Source: Carpediemonas membranifera BICM (taxonomy: Eukaryota > Protista > Fornicata). Taken from it: a DNA stretch of 64,000 bases. Made by a program: the position numbers and the translations under genes. Under the pieces are notes generated by a model. That model searched no databases and was not told the origin of the DNA. It saw only the letters and a list, made by a program, of their open reading frames with translations. Of this stretch, positions 46,114 through 64,000 are shown in pieces. Position 1 is the first letter of the stretch. Each line of letters opens with the position of its first letter. The stretch spans positions 62,001-126,000 of the forward strand of contig JAHDYR010000064.1 in NCBI GenBank assembly GCA_019828565.1. The letters are read 5' to 3'.

Positions 46114-47137
46114 CGGTGAGAAAATGAACTTCACTTAATTCTTACCGGTTTCCGCCATCACTAACGATGCTGCCAGACGGCCCCACGGCGGCATTCAAGC
46201 CTATTGTATGGAATATGTGGTAAAATAAGCCACTTGCGTCATCGTATTGACGTTTGATACCACTGGTAAAGCTATTCTGGTGAGCTTTTCTCAGAAATTG
46301 GTAAGTCTAGTCAATTTTCTCAGTAACACGGAGCCGGTACGCAATTCAGTAGAAGAATCTGAAGTTCCTGGCATGTTTCCTCTAGTGTCGTCTATAAGCA
46401 TTAAAAACGTTCCGTACTCAGGTGCGTCGCGTAGGGACGAGCCAACCGTCAAGGTTGGTCAAATGATTGGATCAATTCGGCTGGCCACAATTTGGTTTCG
46501 CCGCCACAGCATGACGTAAATATTCTTCCCCCCGTGTGTTTTCTGGTTCCGCAGGGGACCTGCAATTTTCGAAAATCACGTGCCTTGCACGAGTCCAACG
46601 GACTAATCGACAATATTGCAACAAGATGTTTAATACAGCCGGTGGCATCGGCTTCTTCGAGGAGTTCTGAAGTGAACTCGTCAAACCCATAAACTGGGCC
46701 GAATTTCCCCGGAGGCGAAAATCGTCCCAGGGCCACCGCCGGCGCCCAGAAGCCTCATGGTGGCTTCCTGAGCGGGGTTGCGCGCGTGGCTGCACCGGGC
46801 CACGGATGCCCGCAGTCTTGGCTCCGTAGTGCCGCCCATTTGGTCGACGATAATCGACTATTCCAAATTGATCTAATCAAATTTATCTCCGTTTGGTGGC
46901 CTTGGCCCGTCATCCGCGTCGCCTTCGGCCATCCTCACGGTTTCTGCTGGAGGGATACGATCTGCTCGCGATCGGGATGGATCAAGACCGTATCCACAAT
47001 CATATCTTTCGAGATTTTCTAAATATTTTGACCATCTTTCTCGTGTCCCCGGAATCCTGTTCTGACACACCCTGACCCAGCAGTGTCAGGGCGTGAGCCA
47101 CGCCCGAGGCGTGATAGCTTACATATCGATGATATGC

Positions 47138-51143: not shown

Positions 51144-53635
51144 GGTGGTCTCTTGCCGACATACTGTTAAAAACGGGGTTTCGATGCCTGAGGAAATCAT
51201 GAGGAAGTCCGTTTTCACGAAAAAAAATGGTGAAAACATTAGATTCAGTGAAATCTTTTCACCATTTTCACAAGGCGCAAGAAAACGAAAGAGATGGCAC
51301 TGAACACCCCTGGATGTACAGGACATCACTATACATGCTTTCCATGCATCTGTGAGCTTCTGCATTTTTCACACATTTTCACGAAATGCTTCTCTGCACT
51401 GAGACCACTGTTCGCCAAGAGAATCACTGATGTTGTCGATAAATGCTATCCATAAGGTATTCCTGTCTTTATTTCCGCTGCTGCTTCCCTCGTAGCGACG
51501 CACAGGTAGCTGTCGCAAAATGCACTTTAAGACCGAATTTCGCACAGCTACCTGTGCATGGTGTTTGAGCTTGATTGAAAGGCACTGAACAATACAGGGC
51601 TACTCTGCAGGTAACAGTAAGCAAAGCTTGAGCGACTTTGGGCCTCGAATGTGGTTGTATCTCATCAATGTTTATGACCCACCCTCGCATCATCCTGATC
51701 AGAACTTCACGCTTACTCACATGCTCAAATACTATCCATATGTCCTCCCTGTCACCGATGTAGTCGTTGTCGACCGTGTCTCAGCCTGGATACTCCTCCT
51801 GTCGACCGCACTGTCGTCTCCAACGTCTGTTAGGTCGACCCTGGTGTCCAACTCAGTTATATTAGTCATCTAATGCAGGCTAAATTCTTTATACATGACC
51901 ACGGAGTTGTTCAATGCGACTTCAAGTCTCACAATTTTCTTTTCCGCTCTGAACAGAATGTATAGGTGACTGAATATGGCTCAGCGATGACTAGAATCAC
52001 AACTAATTGTCCTCTCTGACTCTTTGAAAGCTATTCGAGTGTGTCAGATCATTCTAATCTTTCCAGTCGCGCCATAATGTTAAACGGGAAGCCAAATCTC
52101 GCGATTGAATACGCATAGTCGACGCAGAGAAGCATTAAATAGCCAAGAACGTCTTATTGAACATGAGAGTATTGTTGACGTGACTCCAACATTAGTCCTC
52201 GGATTGATATTATGTCGAGACAGGAAGATGGGAGGGATGCACCACGACTCATGAGACTAAATGTCTCCCAAACCATCTCCTAAACCATTTGATGTAGTGT
52301 GATTGAACTTGTACTGTGTTTACCTTGAAGTGCGCCCCATGTATTTTTTTGTTTACGTATATCAACATAAATACGCCAATTTATTATCGTAAAATTGCTG
52401 GGCCCGGGTCAGCACAGTCTAAGGACCCGCCATATCGCTTTTCAGGTAGAAGTAGTCTGAACCCTAAATTTGCTTTACGTATATCTCGGTAAATAGACTC
52501 GAACGATATGTAAAAATCTTGGATCCGTCCTAACATATCAAATACTACACATATACCAAGTTTCAGCCAAATCCAAGCCGAGAAGATCACCCCCGTCAAG
52601 CCCATGGACAATGGTAGGTCAGAGTGGTTTTGGCGAAAATAACAGTGCATTGCTGTATTCCAAATGTATGACTTATAGTGCAATGCACTGTTATTTTCGC
52701 AGAGCCGAACTTGGAGGTGGCCAGAAACTGACATCGCTGAAAAGCTCAGAGACGTCGTTATATCATCTATAACGGCATCTCTGAGCTTTTGGGCGCACGG
52801 TTTCATCCTGGCGGGGAGATCGATGCTTGTGAAAATGAAGAATCGACTAGGAGAGCTCTACGCTTGCATGCAGCCTTCTATTAGGTTGTTGATGTTGGTT
52901 ATATGCTTCTTTTTCGTTCTCGATGCGTGTGGATGAGTATTCTGTTGCAAGATTCATTTTGATGGACTGATGTTGGTTATAGAGGATAAAGGCACCAGAA
53001 TGGATCATATGCATGCTATAAACCCGTTCTGTGCCGTTGGAATAGCGTTATTCGATAGTCAGTAGCACTTGTTGTTCGTTTCACTCGTTGCAATCATTAA
53101 AGTGCACATGGAGAAATGATAAATCCTGGCCCATCTGTGCATGTGACAGCAACAAGGGGTCTCGGGGTAAGAGCAGGAACAAGAATTGGGAACAGCGAAT
53201 TCCAGGCTGCCTGTCAAAGCGCTAAGAACTGACCCCAGCCAGGTGAAACAAAGGGAACTTCTCAGAATGTCATAATATTCGCTGGTGTATGAGACTCACT
53301 GCCTCCCCTGCTCACCCCAATTAGCGATATAGGGACTTAGGGATGTGCAGTGCAATGACCGTGATAAATGCGGACGCAGAAGAGGCAGACCAGCACTTGT
53401 GGGGAACACTCACACCCCCGCTAAATCACACGCAAGGTCACCGGAGAAGACACAAGTCTCATAGAGTCCACAGATAGGAAGTTTTGAGGTCATAACTCTA
53501 TGGTCCATGCTGGGTGCCTCGGCAATATTGAGATAGTAAGTGCAGAGGGTGCGTGCTGGAGCCCCTATAGGCTTTAGAGCCCTTCTCGTCATCATTCAGA
53601 GGATGATGTAGCGCCCAGGCCGGGTGGAGAGTGGC

Positions 53636-53729
53636 TGTCATGACGACCTCATTTAATGATCAGTCTTATTTGGTCAATGATCTCAAACCTGCTTCTAAAT
53701 TTCACTCTCTCAATTGTTTGGGTACCACA
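53636..53729 (+). repeat. 5' LTR of E4
   Basis: TGTCATGACG...GGTACCACA, identical to 57878-57971. Confidence 0.97.
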
Positions 53730-53740
53730 GTAATTACTGC

Positions 53741-57568: not shown

Positions 57569-57877
57569 TAACCAACGGCTCATCAAAAAGCCATTTTGGG
57601 GTTTTGCCCAGTTGGTGACCGCAGCCTAGGGGGGGAAGAGCAGAACGTTGGAATCTAGTTACTGATATTGGTTATTTCTTATGTTCTACACCATTCTGTG
57701 CGCTATTTGTTCGTTTAGAACAGCGTTCTTCAGACTATTGTGCTCAATTGCGTTTTTGACTTCACTGGAGTCGGTCTGGCGGGTTTTGCATTTCGCCGGA
57801 CTTGAACCGTTAGAATTTTTGCTGACGGTTGGGAGGCACGTTTGAGCTTGTGGACGGTTTGGGATCATGGGGGGAAG

Positions 57878-57971
57878 TGTCATGACGACCTCATTTAATG
57901 ATCAGTCTTATTTGGTCAATGATCTCAAACCTGCTTCTAAATTTCACTCTCTCAATTGTTTGGGTACCACA
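57878..57971 (+). repeat. 3' LTR of E4
   Basis: Preceded by the PPT and followed by the TSD. Confidence 0.97.
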
Positions 57972-58372
57972 GTGGCGAAAATGGTCATTCACGAGCTTGG
58001 GCAGTTACCCGCGTCTCTCGGCTGTGGGATAATGGGATACCGGACCTGTCCATGACCGAACACCAATCGACCTAAAATTATATTTAATGCGAATAAAAAT
58101 TTACGATGGTGTCTCTGACCTCCTGCCATGATACAGGTGCGAGAGGTACAAAGTTATTCTTTTTGATGTTTTTCTCCCGAGACCATTTTGTGCCACCAAG
58201 AAAAAAAAAGTGGCACAAATGAGTTTGAAGTTTGTGTGCTGCAGAACTACATTCTGAGGTGTTCAGGGGATGTGTATAGTGTCTAATAAAGTACCCAGTG
58301 CAAACCACCAGCGGCATGATCATCACAATAGCGATTACGAACTGGGAAATTTCACATTTTCACATTTCACGG

Positions 58373-58480
58373 TGTCAGCCATTTATATATGAGATACGTA
58401 TTTGATACGGTCTTGATCCGTCCAGCTCGACACCCTTGTGTCGAGCTCTCTTTGTAAAGTCTTTTTCCTTAGTGATCACA
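58373..58480 (+). repeat. Candidate 5' LTR of E5 (108 bp)
   Basis: TGTCAG...ATCACA, 20 nt upstream of the gag ATG, with the same junction architecture as E4. The 3' LTR is not in the window. Confidence 0.7.
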
Positions 58481-58500
58481 GTAAGCTTACTTCCAAACTA

Positions 58501-61500
58501 ATGGATAAGGGACCTTTATGTACACAGCCTGAGATTCACGCAGTCCTCTCATTTGCCGAGAAATTGGATAAGCATGTTCGCGCGGGCGGAAAGAGGCGCT
58601 TGCTTAAGCGACTCGGACCCGCGGTGACCTCATACTGCAAGGCGATGGGTACTGATATTACCAGAAAGTATCAGGCCGCAAAACATCACGATGATGGTTC
58701 CAAAAGAACGAAGCACGAGCGCGAGGACATCGTATTCCAGGCGATTGTGGACATTGTTAAGCCCTCCGATGCGATCCTTGAGCGCCGCCTTTTCGACCTA
58801 TCGACCACTGGTATCGATATTGGCCGCCTATCTCTCTATATCGACCGCTTCGCTTCCCGCCGCCGTCTCATTGCACCCACGGGCAAGGATTCAGTCCTTC
58901 GCGGCCAGTTTTTGCGCGGAATCCAAGACGAAACGCTCAGAGAGGAGGTTTCTCACGCCTCCAAGGGTCTGTCACTTGATGCGACCTTTTCGACCGCCCT
59001 CCTGACATGTAAGCGTCTGGAGGAAGCAATCAAGCTCACTTCAACGTCCAAGCCTGCCCCTGCTCAAGAGCGCGAACGCTCTAAGCAGTCCGCTGTCCGC
59101 AAACGCCCCCCGCGTGAGCAGCGCGAGCCTCAGGATCAGCCGCGCCAAGACAAGCGGCAGCAACACCAGCCCCGCCAGTATCAGACGCACTTCCACCAGC
59201 AAGGCCAACGTCACGGTCAGCGTCAGCAGCAGACGCAACACCACGGTCACCAGCGAGACATCGTATGCTTTAACTGCGGCAGGCCGAACCACCGCGCTTT
59301 CGAATGCACCAGAGAGAAGGCCGTGTGCGCGAAGTGCGGCAAGTCGGGGCACCTAGACAAGTTCTGTCAGGTAAACCCCAGATCATGCTTCTCTGTCTCT
59401 GTTTCTACGTCGGCGGCTGAAGGCCAGCGCTCCCTACCCGTCGTGAGTGCCGTCGTCCCTATGGGTAGCGACGAATCTACCACATGGCACCGTGTCTTAT
59501 TCGACTGTGGTGCTGACATTTCTCTTGTCAACCCGGCTTCCGCCAGAGCGGCCGAGCTCATTCCGACGAAGCTCGCTGCACCCATTAAGATCAAGACTCC
59601 GGGTGGAACGATCGAGACTGATACGTGTTATGAGGTGCCGTTGAAGATGTGTAAGTCACCTTTCACCCCGAAAGGTCTATCCACCACAGTCTCCGCGTAT
59701 GGGGTTGACTGTGCTTATGATCTCCTCTTGTCATATCAGACCATGGTCGAGTGGGGTATTCTCCCCAGCTTGTGTGAACCGTCTCAGTCTGACAATGAAG
59801 ACGCCTTGGAGCCTTTCGTGCCAGAGCCTGAGCCGCTCCAGGCGTATACTCTGTCTTCGGACTACACTCTCACTCATGACCGCATCCTCGCAGCTTATGC
59901 TCATTGCTTTGATGCTCGAGAAGGGTTCTCAGCATTAGAGCCATACGACCTCGTACTCAAGGAGGACCGCGTCGTCGCCACGAGATCCAATTACATACCA
60001 GAAGCAGGGCCTGTTCGACGAGCACGTCAACGAACTACTGTCGAAGAAATACATCGAGGCCAGCTTCTCGCCATACTCTTCTCCAGCATTGCTCGTCCCC
60101 AAGGGCAAGGACAAGACCAGGATGGTCGTAGACTTCCGCAGAATCAATGATTTGACCACGCCATTCGACTATCCGATCCCCGAGGTTAACACGTGCTTGA
60201 CCAGGCTTGCTGGTGCCAAGGTCTTCGCCACTCTCGACCTCTCGAAAGGGTATCACCAGGTCGAGCTGACCGAGCGTTCTAGGCAATACACGGCGTTTAT
60301 GACCCCCCGTGGGAAGTTCCAATACACCGGAATGCCGTTCGGCCTGAAGAACGCTGGCGCGCACTTTCAGTACGCGATTGAGCGCGGGTTCCAGGACCTC
60401 TTAGGCGACGCCTGCATTATATATATAGATGACATTATCATCTTTGGACGCTCGGAGCAGGAATATCTGGCCAACCTCGCTAAGGTGCTCCGCCGATGTG
60501 ACGAGCTCAAGCTATCGTTGAACAAGGAGAAGTCGCATTTCGGCCTAGCCGAAGTGGAGTTCCTAGGATGGGTTGTGTCCGGCTCGGGTTTCCGGATTGC
60601 TCCAGACAGGATCCGCGATGTAGAAGGCCTGCGGCTACCGAAGACGAAGAAGGCCACGCAGGCCCTTATGGGATTCCTCAACTTTATGAGAGACTTTGTT
60701 CCTAACTTCTCCGAGCTTATCCGACCGTTAGCCCGGGCGGCAAGCGGCAAGGAGGCTCCGGACGGATTACCTCAGGCAGAGGCGCTGGCCAAGGTTAAGG
60801 ACCGCCTCTGCCACGCACCGGCACTCGAGCACTTTGACGTTTCGAAGGATCATGTGGTCATGACAGACGCGTCTGATCTCGGGATCGGGGGTGTTCTCCT
60901 CCAGGACGGCAAGCCGGTGTGTTATATGTCCCACGCGTTCTCAGATGTGCAGACGCGTTGGAGCACGATCGAACAGGAAGCGTATGCGATTGTCACCGCC
61001 CTCCAGAGGTGGCGCCGTTTCCTGTGCTGGACGTCGTTTACTCTCCTCACTGACCACCGGAACCTGGTCTACATGTCACGATCGTCTAACGCAAAAGTCC
61101 AGCGTTGGTACGAGTCAATCGCAGACCTAGACTTCACAGTGAAGCATGTGGCCGGGGTTGACAACGGAGCGGCGGACGGGCTGAGTCGAGTCTTCTCCGC
61201 AACTGCCAGACAGGCAACAGCTACCGATGACGAGATCCAGGCAGCTCATATGCACGGCCAGGCCCACCTCCCGGTTTATACGACGGTAGAGTGGCTGAGA
61301 TCTAACGGGCTCCGGGCTCCAGTGGATAGGGTAGCGCGGGTCATGGATCGTTGCCCCGTGTGCCAACTTACCGCCAAGCCGGCCGAGGCGTCCAGACCGT
61401 ACCTCCACACGGCGAGCCTGCGACCGTTCCAGCGGGTAGCCATGGATACTATTGGCCCCCTACCAGAGTCTCGCGGGTACAAGTTCATCTTAGTTATTAT

Positions 61501-62458
61501 TGATATGGCCTCGCGGTGGACCGAGCTCGTCCCACTCAAGTCCACAAGGGCGGACGAAGCTGTGACTGCCTTCGTCAACGGATGGATTCTCCGGTACGGC
61601 GTGCCCAGAGTTCTACAGACAGACGGTGGCAAGCAGTTCGTCAACAAGCTATTCACAGATCTATCGGTGCGCGTAGGGTTTGCTACTCACGTCACCACCC
61701 CGTACCATCCACAGTCAAACGGCATTGTGGAACGGGCGAACAGCCGCATTGAGCGCATTTTACGCAACAGGCAATACCAGCTTCGGAGCGAGTTGTGGTC
61801 AGACTCCCTCCCTGTCGCGCAGTATATCGTCAACGCGTCTCCCCACACCGCGACACGCTTAACACCGGCCGAGGTCATCTTCGGTAGCGATTTCCGTGTC
61901 CCGGCAGACGTGATGATGGCAGACGTCCAGAGTATGGCTGGACAGCCCAGCAGTAATGTTCAAGCAGCTCAGTTAGCCCGAGACTTGGCAGAGGCGAGAA
62001 TCAAGGTCATGCACCAAGATGCGCTAGACAAAGTGTCAGCAACGACACCTATCTCGTCCGACTATGTGTTGGTCAAGTACCCGAATGGACCGCCGTCCAA
62101 GTTGGCGTCAGGATGGCGAGGGCCTATGAAGCTAGTGCGTCCTATCGTGAGGCAGAACCTCACGGTGGGCTATGTCGTCAAGGATGTCAACACAAAGAAG
62201 GAGTTCCAAGTCGCCTCGGAGAGAGTTCGCGCCTTTATGGGTGAGTTGTCCGAGCAACGGGCTCAGGAACTCGCGGCAGTCACGCTCGGTGAATATCTGG
62301 TCGAGTCCATACTAGAGTCGACGAGTGAGGCCAGGATGAGAGACAGGAAGTTCCGGGTTAGATGGCTGGGATATGAGCCGTCAGAGGACACATGGGAACC
62401 ATATGGGAATGTCAAGGGTTGTGAAGCACTGGATGTATTCCTGGGAAGGGCCAAGTAA
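58501..62458 (+). mobile_element. Chromoviral Ty3/gypsy element E5 gag-pol, frameshift at ~60000
   Basis: Two CCHC knuckles, FDCGA protease, YIDD, TDAS, QTDGG...NGIVER, WRGP, YLVESI..VRWLGYEPSEDTWEP. Confidence 0.95.
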
Positions 62459-62487: not shown

Positions 62488-63816
62488 TTATTCAATGGCA
62501 CCAAGGCTGTCACCAAGCTCAAAGAAGATGCCGTCATGCTCCCAGCGCCGACGAACACGACGCCATAAGTTATGCTCGTTGAGATAACGAGTGACAGGCA
62601 TGGTGCGGCAAAGATCCTGGGTCAGGAAGGTCAGTGACGGCAGCGGATAGCCCGAAAACTGGACGAGCAGGATGAACGACTCCTCCTGGCGGGCGTTCTC
62701 GTAGAGCTCGATGTGCTCTTTGACCTCCACCACACCGTACGCGGCGGACGTGTCCGTGAGCTGGAGCGTGAACAGCTCCTTGTTCATGGCAAGCTCCATA
62801 GCCGGGAGATGCTCAAGCCGGACACAGGTCCAATAGGCCCGAACGAAGTCGCGGGAGCGGGTGGCGGTCAGGCGCGAGGCACCGCGGTTCTCAGCCGCCA
62901 TAAGCAGCGAGAACATGGCTGGGTGTCGGCCTGCCATCACCACGCGCTTGAGGAGGTCCACCACCACATCACGAGAGACCGTGGCACCCGGCTCTCGAGT
63001 GCGCTTCAGCGCCAGGAGGGCTCCCTCAGCTGTGGCGACGTGGTTTGTGGCAAACCGGTCGCTCGTCCCGCCCTGGACCAGAGCCGCGGCTACGGCGCGA
63101 GTGTCTTGGACACCCTCCATGGAGCGCTGGAGAGCGCACCCGATGGCCGTCACCTCCGCGAACCGACGAAGGATGTCGGCAGAGACGTAAGCAGCCGTGA
63201 CCTCGGTCATAGCGCTGCCGAAGAGCTTCCCGGTCTGAACTCGGTCGAGGAGGGCTGTGAAATTGACTTCGAAGCAGTTGGAGAAGCGAGCAGTGCTGAT
63301 CTCCGCAAAGGTGGTGCGGAAGGTCTCGACCTGACGCTGCTCGCGTGCCGGAAGAGGTTCGGCGGGCTCGGTCGGCTCGGCGACGGTCACAATAGCCCTA
63401 GGGGTTTCGACATTGGCGCGGTAGCGGGTCTGTCGGTGGAATGGGCGGACAGGGACCTCTACGACACGCTGGTTGAACTCAGCGCCCAGCTCACTCGTGC
63501 GGGTGATTGTGGTCTGAGCAGATTCGGGATGGCAGTCGGTGATGTGCCGTCCGGAGCGTCGAGGTCGGAGAACGGTGCGATCGGGAGCTGAACCAGCTTC
63601 TTGGTGCGAAATGGCATCACCATCGGTGTTCTCAGCGGTGTTTTCAGTGGATGGAGGCGTGTGAGAACCTTCAGTAGCTTCCTGGGAGCCGTCACCATTC
63701 AGCAGCTCGACATGCTTTCGCTTCAAGGCCTGAAGATCGGAGATGAGCACACCAGTAGGATTGGCCGTCATATACTGGTCGATTGCAGCAAAGAGTTCCT
63801 CCTCTACGTTTGTCAT
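62488..63816 (-). CDS. Antisense ORF (~442 aa) with a C-terminal chromodomain-like segment
   Basis: Convergent with E5 pol (29-bp gap). YGVVEVKEH...LLVQFSGYP.PSLTF...V..YL. TATA-like sequence at ~63872-63880. Confidence 0.65.
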   Translation of the reverse strand: MTNVEEELFAAIDQYMTANPTGVLISDLQALKRKHVELLNGDGSQEATEGSHTPPSTENTAENTDGDAISHQEAGSAPDRTVLRPRRSGRHITDCHPESAQTTITRTSELGAEFNQRVVEVPVRPFHRQTRYRANVETPRAIVTVAEPTEPAEPLPAREQRQVETFRTTFAEISTARFSNCFEVNFTALLDRVQTGKLFGSAMTEVTAAYVSADILRRFAEVTAIGCALQRSMEGVQDTRAVAAALVQGGTSDRFATNHVATAEGALLALKRTREPGATVSRDVVVDLLKRVVMAGRHPAMFSLLMAAENRGASRLTATRSRDFVRAYWTCVRLEHLPAMELAMNKELFTLQLTDTSAAYGVVEVKEHIELYENARQEESFILLVQFSGYPLPSLTFLTQDLCRTMPVTRYLNEHNLWRRVRRRWEHDGIFFELGDSLGAIE

Positions 63817-64000
63817 AGCGCCGTTTGAAATCTGGGAGGCGTCCCAGATTTGATTTACATGTATACATGAGTTATATAATCTCAGGAGGACACCCACCGC
63901 GCAAGTTACAGACGCTGAGCACGCCTGTATAGCCAATACTGGCCAAGGGACAGCCGTTCACGTATTCTCTCGCGCGTTTTATGCCGAGACGAGATCTCGA

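Follow-up and report, generated by a model that had tools for sequence, protein, structure and literature searches.

How does a long terminal repeat (LTR) retroelement start reverse transcription if the site at which its primer should bind is complementary only to itself? This question is raised by E5, an element at the right end of a 64,000-nucleotide stretch of the Carpediemonas membranifera BICM genome (contig JAHDYR010000064.1, forward strand, positions 62,001 to 126,000; G000:C63:62001-126000 of the 24.2-Mb assembly). The whole stretch is called the window here, and coordinates given as window-extended continue past 64,000. At the downstream end of its 5′ LTR, where a tRNA primer-binding site would be expected, E5 carries a perfect palindrome. 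Acquisition of the first primer is a defining step of the life cycle of LTR retroelements, and to our knowledge the only established solutions are a host tRNA and a fold-back of the Tf1 type. A site that pairs with nothing but itself would imply a different solution, one that ties RNA dimerisation to initiation.

The palindrome at the LTR end of E5 and its relatives

The boundaries of E5 were determined from its copies in the assembly. A search with positions 58373-58600 gave 14 full-length matches, and at least 14 further places, 3′ or solo LTRs, matched the query only over its nucleotides 1-108, with some runs reaching 111. The E5 LTR was therefore set to 58373-58480. The 3′ LTR belonging to this copy lies beyond the window at G000:C63:131249-131356 (69249-69356 window-extended) and ends with the same CA, so that the LTR end proposed in a first-pass annotation of the window holds. 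The 5-bp target-site duplication CACGG predicted there proved to be the 4-bp duplication ACGG, and 4-bp duplications flank nine of nine paired copies of the family. A purine tract, ATGGGGGGGAAG, is located directly upstream of each E5 3′ LTR copy. E5 thus has the structural features of the Metaviridae: its LTRs are direct repeats of the form TG...CA, a purine tract precedes the 3′ LTR, and the insertion is flanked by a target-site duplication. Its coding part follows the order of Ty3/gypsy chromoviruses (CCHC Gag, protease, reverse transcriptase (RT), RNase H, integrase and a C-terminal chromodomain), and the best solved relatives of the pol product are Ty3 Gag-Pol (7q5b, 8e-78) and Ty3 RT (4ol8). 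Domain content and order together with the affinity to Ty3 therefore place the element among the gypsy chromoviruses and not in Ty1/copia; judged by its sequence, E5 is a young, multi-copy Ty3/gypsy chromovirus.

The palindrome AGTAAGCTTACT is identical in all 14 full E5 copies. It is immediately preceded by GTGATCAC (58472-58479) and followed, after nine nucleotides (TCCAAACTA), by the gag ATG, as the first-pass annotation had described. The 9-nt spacer is not conserved. The 8-bp palindrome GTGATCAC was rejected as a meaningful feature of its own, since it is absent from the related families E5b and E5c and compatible with chance. Neither TGG nor any other candidate primer site was found in the 20 nucleotides before the E5 ATG. 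The earlier interpretation would have been overturned by a different end of the 3′ LTR or by a TGG site elsewhere; the end is the same, and no TGG lies between LTR and ATG.

Further 5′ junctions were found by locating RT matches in the assembly and then reading the junction pieces. Altogether, 17 family representatives were compared, of which this genome contributed 16 and a public contig of another assembly the last. All 17 carry a perfect palindrome in one register, with the LTR-terminal A as its first base. Besides AGTAAGCTTACT in E5, these are AGTAACGTTACT in E5b (RT 85% identical to E5), AGTAATATTACT in E5c (RT 75% identical), AGTACTAGTACT in F067, F070 and F081, AATACTAGTATT in F068, F072 and F080, ATTAACGTTAAT in F069, ATTTCTAGAAAT in F073 and F074, ATTAGATCTAAT in F079 and ATTAGTACTAAT in F083. 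E4, a second element of the window, has AGTAATTACT, which becomes 12 bp long with the flanking C and G, and F43, an element with 43-bp LTRs, has AGAAGCTTCT. The public contig PPCM01002410.1 (pol 61% identical) shows AGTATTAATACT at the corresponding position, with its ATG 6 nt further on (5 intervening bases). PPCM01003333.1 (L087), which is outside the 17, has the same palindrome as L086; this contig contains no 3′ LTR, and its palindrome may be set off from CA by two additional bases. The LTR end was verified by 3′ or solo copies in 12 families, namely E5, E4, F43 and nine others, and in these nine the second LTR copy diverges immediately after the same CA. For E5c, L066 is such a 3′ or solo LTR. 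Altogether, the junctions comprise at least 11 different palindrome sequences, which in places differ between close relatives. Distant metagenome relatives (28-35% identity) have no palindrome at the expected place, and a tRNA-type site is found there where the LTRs are resolved.

Perfect palindromes of at least 12 bp occur 15 times in the 64-kb window (2.3e-4 per position), which equals the random expectation; the E4 and E5 junctions account for two of them. No other palindrome of the junction type was revealed when the window was scanned. A chance origin of the junction palindromes is excluded. As noted in the first-pass annotation, E4 and E5 differ outside the junction: the two LTRs are barely alignable and the Gag proteins are unrelated (BLASTP E = 0.17). 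The pol proteins are 39% identical.

Fourteen aligned twelve-mer junctions from 14 families, with six self-pairs each, were analysed for covariation. All 84 pair cells are Watson-Crick pairs and none is a G-U pair. Two-sided, compensatory changes were found in four of the six pairs (20 cells), the two invariant pairs being the LTR-terminal A with its T and the pair at the third position. The observed pairing or covariation score was reached by none of 500 shuffles, and sliding the 3′ partner by one to three columns lowered pairing to 20-66%. The palindromes of E5, E5b and E5c differ only in the central dinucleotide (GC, CG and AT), which is self-complementary in each. Since the symmetry is kept while the sequence changes between families, selection on base pairing is well supported, and far more strongly than by E4 and E5, from which it had been suggested. 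We are thus highly confident that the palindrome acts as a selected cis-element at the position of the primer site.

Candidate primers and a proposed pairing of two element RNAs

By definition, the end of the LTR is the point at which the 3′ end of the minus-strand primer anneals. Because all verified families have their LTR end one base into the palindrome, positions 58481-58491 were taken as the operational primer-binding site. Such a primer must therefore end in the first 11 nucleotides of the palindrome itself, and the only known RNA that contains them is the element transcript at the same site.

Other primers were searched for. None of the 17 families has a TGG in primer-site position. 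The E5 10-mer GTAAGCTTAC occurs at 29 genome sites, 14 of which are the E5 junctions, and a comparison of coordinates located none of them in the 63 tRNA genes listed by an Rfam search, out of about 497 candidates. E5 was therefore not assigned to the tRNA-primed class, as it has neither TGG nor a match among the 63 listed genes. The same procedure, applied as a positive control to the distant chromoviruses of the WLWD01 contigs (31-34% identity), gave LTRs of about 400 bp that end with CACA and are followed 2-3 nt on by TGGTGGCAGCGGTGG, a normal tRNA-type site. Dozens of such chromoviruses with about 400-bp LTRs and the site TGGTGGCAGCGGTGG (L101-L162, public contigs WLWD01...) are present in one large eukaryotic assembly of the metagenome collection. 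For a fold-back of the Tf1 type, no LTR contains a complement to the site longer than 5-6 nt, which is no better than in shuffles; Tf1/sushi fold-back at the E5 palindrome was rejected, since the LTR has no complementary segment of at least 7 nt. A second copy of the kind found in the fungal GalEa elements was not detected either (no complement of at least 7 nt within 70 nt downstream). The palindromes are predicted to form RNA homodimers with free energies (dG) of −10 to −16 kcal/mol across the families (−15.5 kcal/mol for E5), while the monomers do not fold and no hairpin is predicted for the E5 monomer.

Since the site is complementary only to itself, the most likely primer is the same site on a second element RNA, and because no LTR segment complements it, the pairing must join two molecules. 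Two genomic RNAs would pair via the palindrome in a 12-bp duplex. One strand would then receive a nick between palindrome positions 11 and 12, the likely enzyme being the RNase H of the element, as in Tf1, and the new 3′-OH, annealed over 11 bp, would be extended across the last LTR base into U5 (the unique 5′ region of the LTR) and R (the repeat region). In retroviruses, the plus strand copies the tRNA primer. A plus strand that copies the primer here would rewrite the site from the partner in each cycle, and such rewriting, if it occurs, would account for the lack of G-U pairs and for the readiness with which both sides of a pair change. On this sequence evidence, replication of the elements probably begins with two of their own RNAs paired to each other. 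In our best reading, the palindrome serves as primer-binding site in place of a tRNA-type one; that the primer is the identical site of another element RNA, cut after about 11 nt, we consider an evenly balanced proposition. More tentatively, and with a probability somewhat short of even, we suggest that one branch of the gypsy chromoviruses has merged RNA dimerisation and priming in a single 12-nt palindrome, the primer being the co-packaged sister RNA cut 11 nt into the duplex (trans self-priming).

A helix predicted in the leader is similar to the U5-leader and U5-IR (inverted repeat) stems at the primer sites of retroviruses and of Tf1. In the minimum-free-energy fold of the E5 leader (z = −3.1), a helix between U5 and the start of gag leaves the palindrome at its tip. 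The U5-leader duplex of E5 has a dG of −15.9 compared with a shuffled mean of −8.2 (p = 0.008), and it is stronger than in shuffles (p < 0.05) in 12 of the 17 families (Fisher 3e-9). The strands of the helix differ by family, with CCUUAG/CUAAUGG in E5 and UUGUUCUCA/UGAGGACAA in E5b. These predictions are suggestive of a helix from U5 to the gag start that tends to hold the palindrome at its tip.

Several points weigh against priming by a second element RNA. We infer the priming mechanism as a whole, including the cut at position 11, the RNA dimers, the primer and the transcript ends. A primer consisting of the whole 5′ leader makes it difficult to stop plus-strand strong-stop synthesis, and the model requires an extra, hypothetical cut. 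Trimming by integrase might hide a priming point that is located further inside or beyond the palindrome. The total lack of G-U pairs also fits a role at the DNA level. The tRNA comparison covers 63 of about 497 candidates and was made by coordinates. The combined Fisher p value is optimistic, since the families are related, and RNAalifold applied to five leaders of the E5 clade returned no column-conserved flanking helix shared between them, only the palindrome's own short hairpin; the case for the U5-leader helix is thus that of the shuffle tests in the individual families.

Palindromes at retroviral primer sites suggest that the E5 palindrome could be a dimerisation or packaging signal only, with priming from another primer or at another site. 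The PBS-Pal of mouse mammary tumour virus (MMTV) and the primer-site palindrome of human immunodeficiency virus 2 (HIV-2) promote the pairing of two genomic RNAs and so help dimer formation (PMC5874298), and the predicted E5 fold sets the palindrome at the tip of a stem, like a dimerisation initiation site (DIS). However, the LTR end one base inside the palindrome in every verified family points to synthesis starting there, and the nine variable nucleotides left before the ATG contain neither TGG nor a conserved motif, which makes a dimerisation signal alone unlikely. The palindrome might also act in DNA, either as a site bound or modified by a dimeric protein or through snap-back of single-stranded complementary DNA during strand transfer or end processing. 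Strict Watson-Crick pairing with no G-U in 84 cells fits DNA symmetry, the cores resemble classic 6-bp recognition sites (AAGCTT, AACGTT, ACTAGT, TCTAGA and AGATCT), and carpediemonad retrotransposons with adenine methyltransferases have been reported (bioRxiv 10.64898/2026.05.21.726589). On the other hand, no single protein site fits at least 11 sequences, some of which differ between close relatives, the constant register relative to the LTR end is indicative of the priming step, and a loopless 12-nt hairpin is unstable (monomer dG 0). Taken together, we regard an action at the DNA level as decidedly improbable.

Each family might instead be primed by a small RNA of the host, or a piece of tRNA, that complements the site. 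This would have a parallel in the known copia-type priming by internal tRNA fragments, for which FunCo1 is an example (PMC5445492), but every one of the at least 11 sequences would require a host RNA of its own that is itself a perfect palindrome. The E5 10-mer is found in 0 of the 63 listed tRNA genes, and a gapless 12-nt palindrome does not fit an arm of the cloverleaf; this explanation is very improbable. The first-pass annotation had also pointed out that CA followed by GTAAG in E5, or by GTAAT in E4, resembles a 5′ splice donor of the element transcript. GTAA, GTAC or GTAT directly follows CA in E4, E5 and six other families, but in 9 of the 17 the position is occupied by AT, TT or GA while the palindrome is kept, so that a splice donor is refuted as an explanation for the families in general, and the GTAAG and GTAAT of E5 and E4 are an accident of their clades. 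A donor does not need the conserved 3′ half of the palindrome, and the gag ATG, 9 nt downstream, would be spliced out. We attach next to no probability to a splice donor at this place. Priming by the same site on a second element RNA remains our preferred explanation.

Under trans self-priming, if it is true, the copying of one genome would consume a second one, and every cycle would overwrite the site with the sequence of the primer. It would be a third priming route for LTR retroelements beside tRNA and the Tf1-type fold-back. As the elements are tiny, young and present in many copies, the question of their priming is directly testable. The LTRs of the lineage are only 43-108 bp long here, and the elements are not described in the public genome annotation. 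Programs for LTR detection that insist on a tRNA-type site will overlook this lineage or assign it wrongly.

Comparison with described retroelements

A full-text literature search yielded no account of gypsy elements with a palindromic primer site, nor any of LTR elements of Carpediemonas. LTR retroelements without a tRNA primer site are a known kind, to which the elements described here belong; the palindromic form appears, from this search, to be new for gypsy elements. The nearest described precedent is that of the fungal GalEa copia elements, published in 2017. Their "Conserved Hairpin Site" is a palindrome, ACTGATCAGT or ACTAATTAGT, once the final A of the LTR is included; it is 10 bp long and nearly invariant, and an inverse-complementary CHSeq2 located 12-41 bp downstream forms a hairpin with it (Donnart et al., 2017, PMC5445492). 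GalEa has no tRNA-type site and no complement in U5, and the authors found no fitting model (PMC5445492). As in GalEa, the palindrome follows the LTR and includes its final A in all 17 representatives, without a tRNA-type site. In contrast, GalEa are copia elements of Pezizomycotina whereas those studied here are gypsy chromoviruses of a metamonad, and the palindromes are 10-12 bp long here, vary between families and have no second copy of at least 7 nt within 70 nt. Trans self-priming, if true, may also explain the palindromic site of GalEa.

Tf1 and Tf2 of fission yeast (Tf1/sushi) are likewise Ty3/gypsy elements with a chromodomain integrase and without a tRNA primer. Tf1 pairs 11 nt of its own RNA with the primer site, and the cut that its RNase H makes in an RNA duplex falls between bases 11 and 12 (PMC7175516). 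The 11-nt primer equals the length of the operational site in E5, a comparison of geometry only. A U5 stem flanks the primer site of Tf1, and a U5-leader helix is predicted here. Unlike in the elements studied here, the primer of Tf1 is the 5′ end of its own transcript folding back, and its site is not palindromic.

Retroviral primer-site palindromes and DIS elements, like the E5 junction, are self-complementary and lie at or near the primer site; they promote RNA pairing, as is proposed for E5. They differ in that they comprise 6 nt within a normal 18-nt tRNA site, or the loop of a separate hairpin, and the tRNA stays the primer. The tRNA-primed chromoviruses (the WLWD01 relatives and Ty3) agree with E5 and E4 in gene order, chromodomain, TG...CA LTRs and purine tract. 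However, their LTRs measure about 400 bp and are followed after 2-3 nt by a TGG... site, whereas the LTRs of E5 and E4 are 94-108 bp long and no TGG follows.

Further features of the elements

Positions of the features of E5 and E4 within the window.
Feature	Position	Strand	Remarks
Left copy of the E5 4-bp target-site duplication, ACGG	58369..58372	+	ACGG again after the 3′ LTR, C63:131357 onward
E5 5′ LTR, 108 bp, TG...CA	58373..58480	+	3′/solo copies match query 1-108 only
Conserved hairpin inside the E5 LTR: AGCTCGACAC, loop CCTT, GTGTCGAGCT	58424..58447	+	Predicted fold
TGTAAA, candidate poly(A) signal	58453..58458	+	22 nt before the E5 LTR end; putative function
U5 strand of the predicted helix enclosing the palindrome	58454..58473	+	Pairs with 58497-58519 in the minimum-free-energy fold
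Perfect 12-bp palindrome AGTAAGCTTACT	58480..58491	+	First A is the last base of the E5 LTR
Operational primer-binding site (putative role), 11 nt directly after the LTR end	58481..58491	+	By position, minus-strand synthesis would start opposite 58480
Leader/gag-start strand of the same predicted helix	58497..58519	+	Includes the gag ATG at 58501; minimum-free-energy fold
E5 gag-protease frame	58501..60150	+	Pfam zf-CCHC, RVP_2; CCHC zinc knuckle, aspartyl protease
E5 pol frame (RT, RNase H, integrase, chromodomain)	60089..62458	+	Pfam RVT_1, RT_RNaseH, rve, Chromo
E4 5′ LTR, 94 bp	53636..53729	+	Exact repeat of 57878-57971
E4 palindrome CAGTAATTACTG	53728..53739	+	10-bp core AGTAATTACT starts at the LTR-terminal A
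E4 3′ LTR	57878..57971	+	Purine tract GGGGGGAAG directly before, 57869-57877

The hairpin inside the E5 LTR has an invariant core, CGACAC/GTGTCG, and is found at the same position in the LTRs of L061, L065, L080, L067, L068 and L073. Its outer pairs change in a compensatory manner (AGCT/AGCT in E5, GACTT/AAGTC in E5c and GGATT/AATCC in F080) and its loop varies. The hairpin is probably an RNA structure of the R region. TGTAAA, AGTAAA or CGTAAA is located 22-30 nt before the LTR end in most families; if this candidate poly(A) signal is real, U5 is only about 10 nt long.

E4 reads CA|GTAATTAC at 53728-53737. The E4 palindrome is identical in 20 of 21 copies and reads GTGATTAC in the remaining one. 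This copy (L048, G000:C26:1202029-1202293) has a single difference in 265 bases, which is located inside the palindrome (GTAATTAC to GTGATTAC) and changes an A-U pair to G-U in RNA. The target-site duplication of E4 is GTGGC in the window (53631-53635) and 5 bp long in five of five paired copies. The length of the duplication therefore differs within one genome, with 4 bp in E5 (nine of nine pairs) and 5 bp in E4 (five of five), both of which are chromoviruses.

The E5 copy of the window exceeds the usual 6.4 kb by about 4.5 kb because another chromovirus, F43, is nested inside it on the minus strand (64252-68802 window-extended; L064 from 8253, L019 1012-1054). This nested element has 43-bp LTRs, carries at the LTR end a 10-bp palindrome of its own, AGAAGCTTCT, and is flanked by the 5-bp duplication AGCCG. 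Behind E5 pol, an antisense frame of 482 codons without Pfam match occupies 62488-63936 of the window on the minus strand; since intact copies are about 6.4 kb long, it appears to be a regular part of E5 and not an insertion. The window elements E1-E3 are 5′-truncated. Near a DIRS-like element, at 46535-46576, the palindrome ATTTTCGAAAAT follows a 30-bp TG...CA stretch (TGTGTTTT...CCTGCA); though its register is one base off, this could be another miniature LTR junction. At L001 (G000:C63:645537-645764, minus strand), an E5 LTR is immediately preceded by the purine tract and immediately followed by the palindrome and gag. Flanked by E5 parts on both sides, this LTR indicates two tandem E5 elements with one common LTR.

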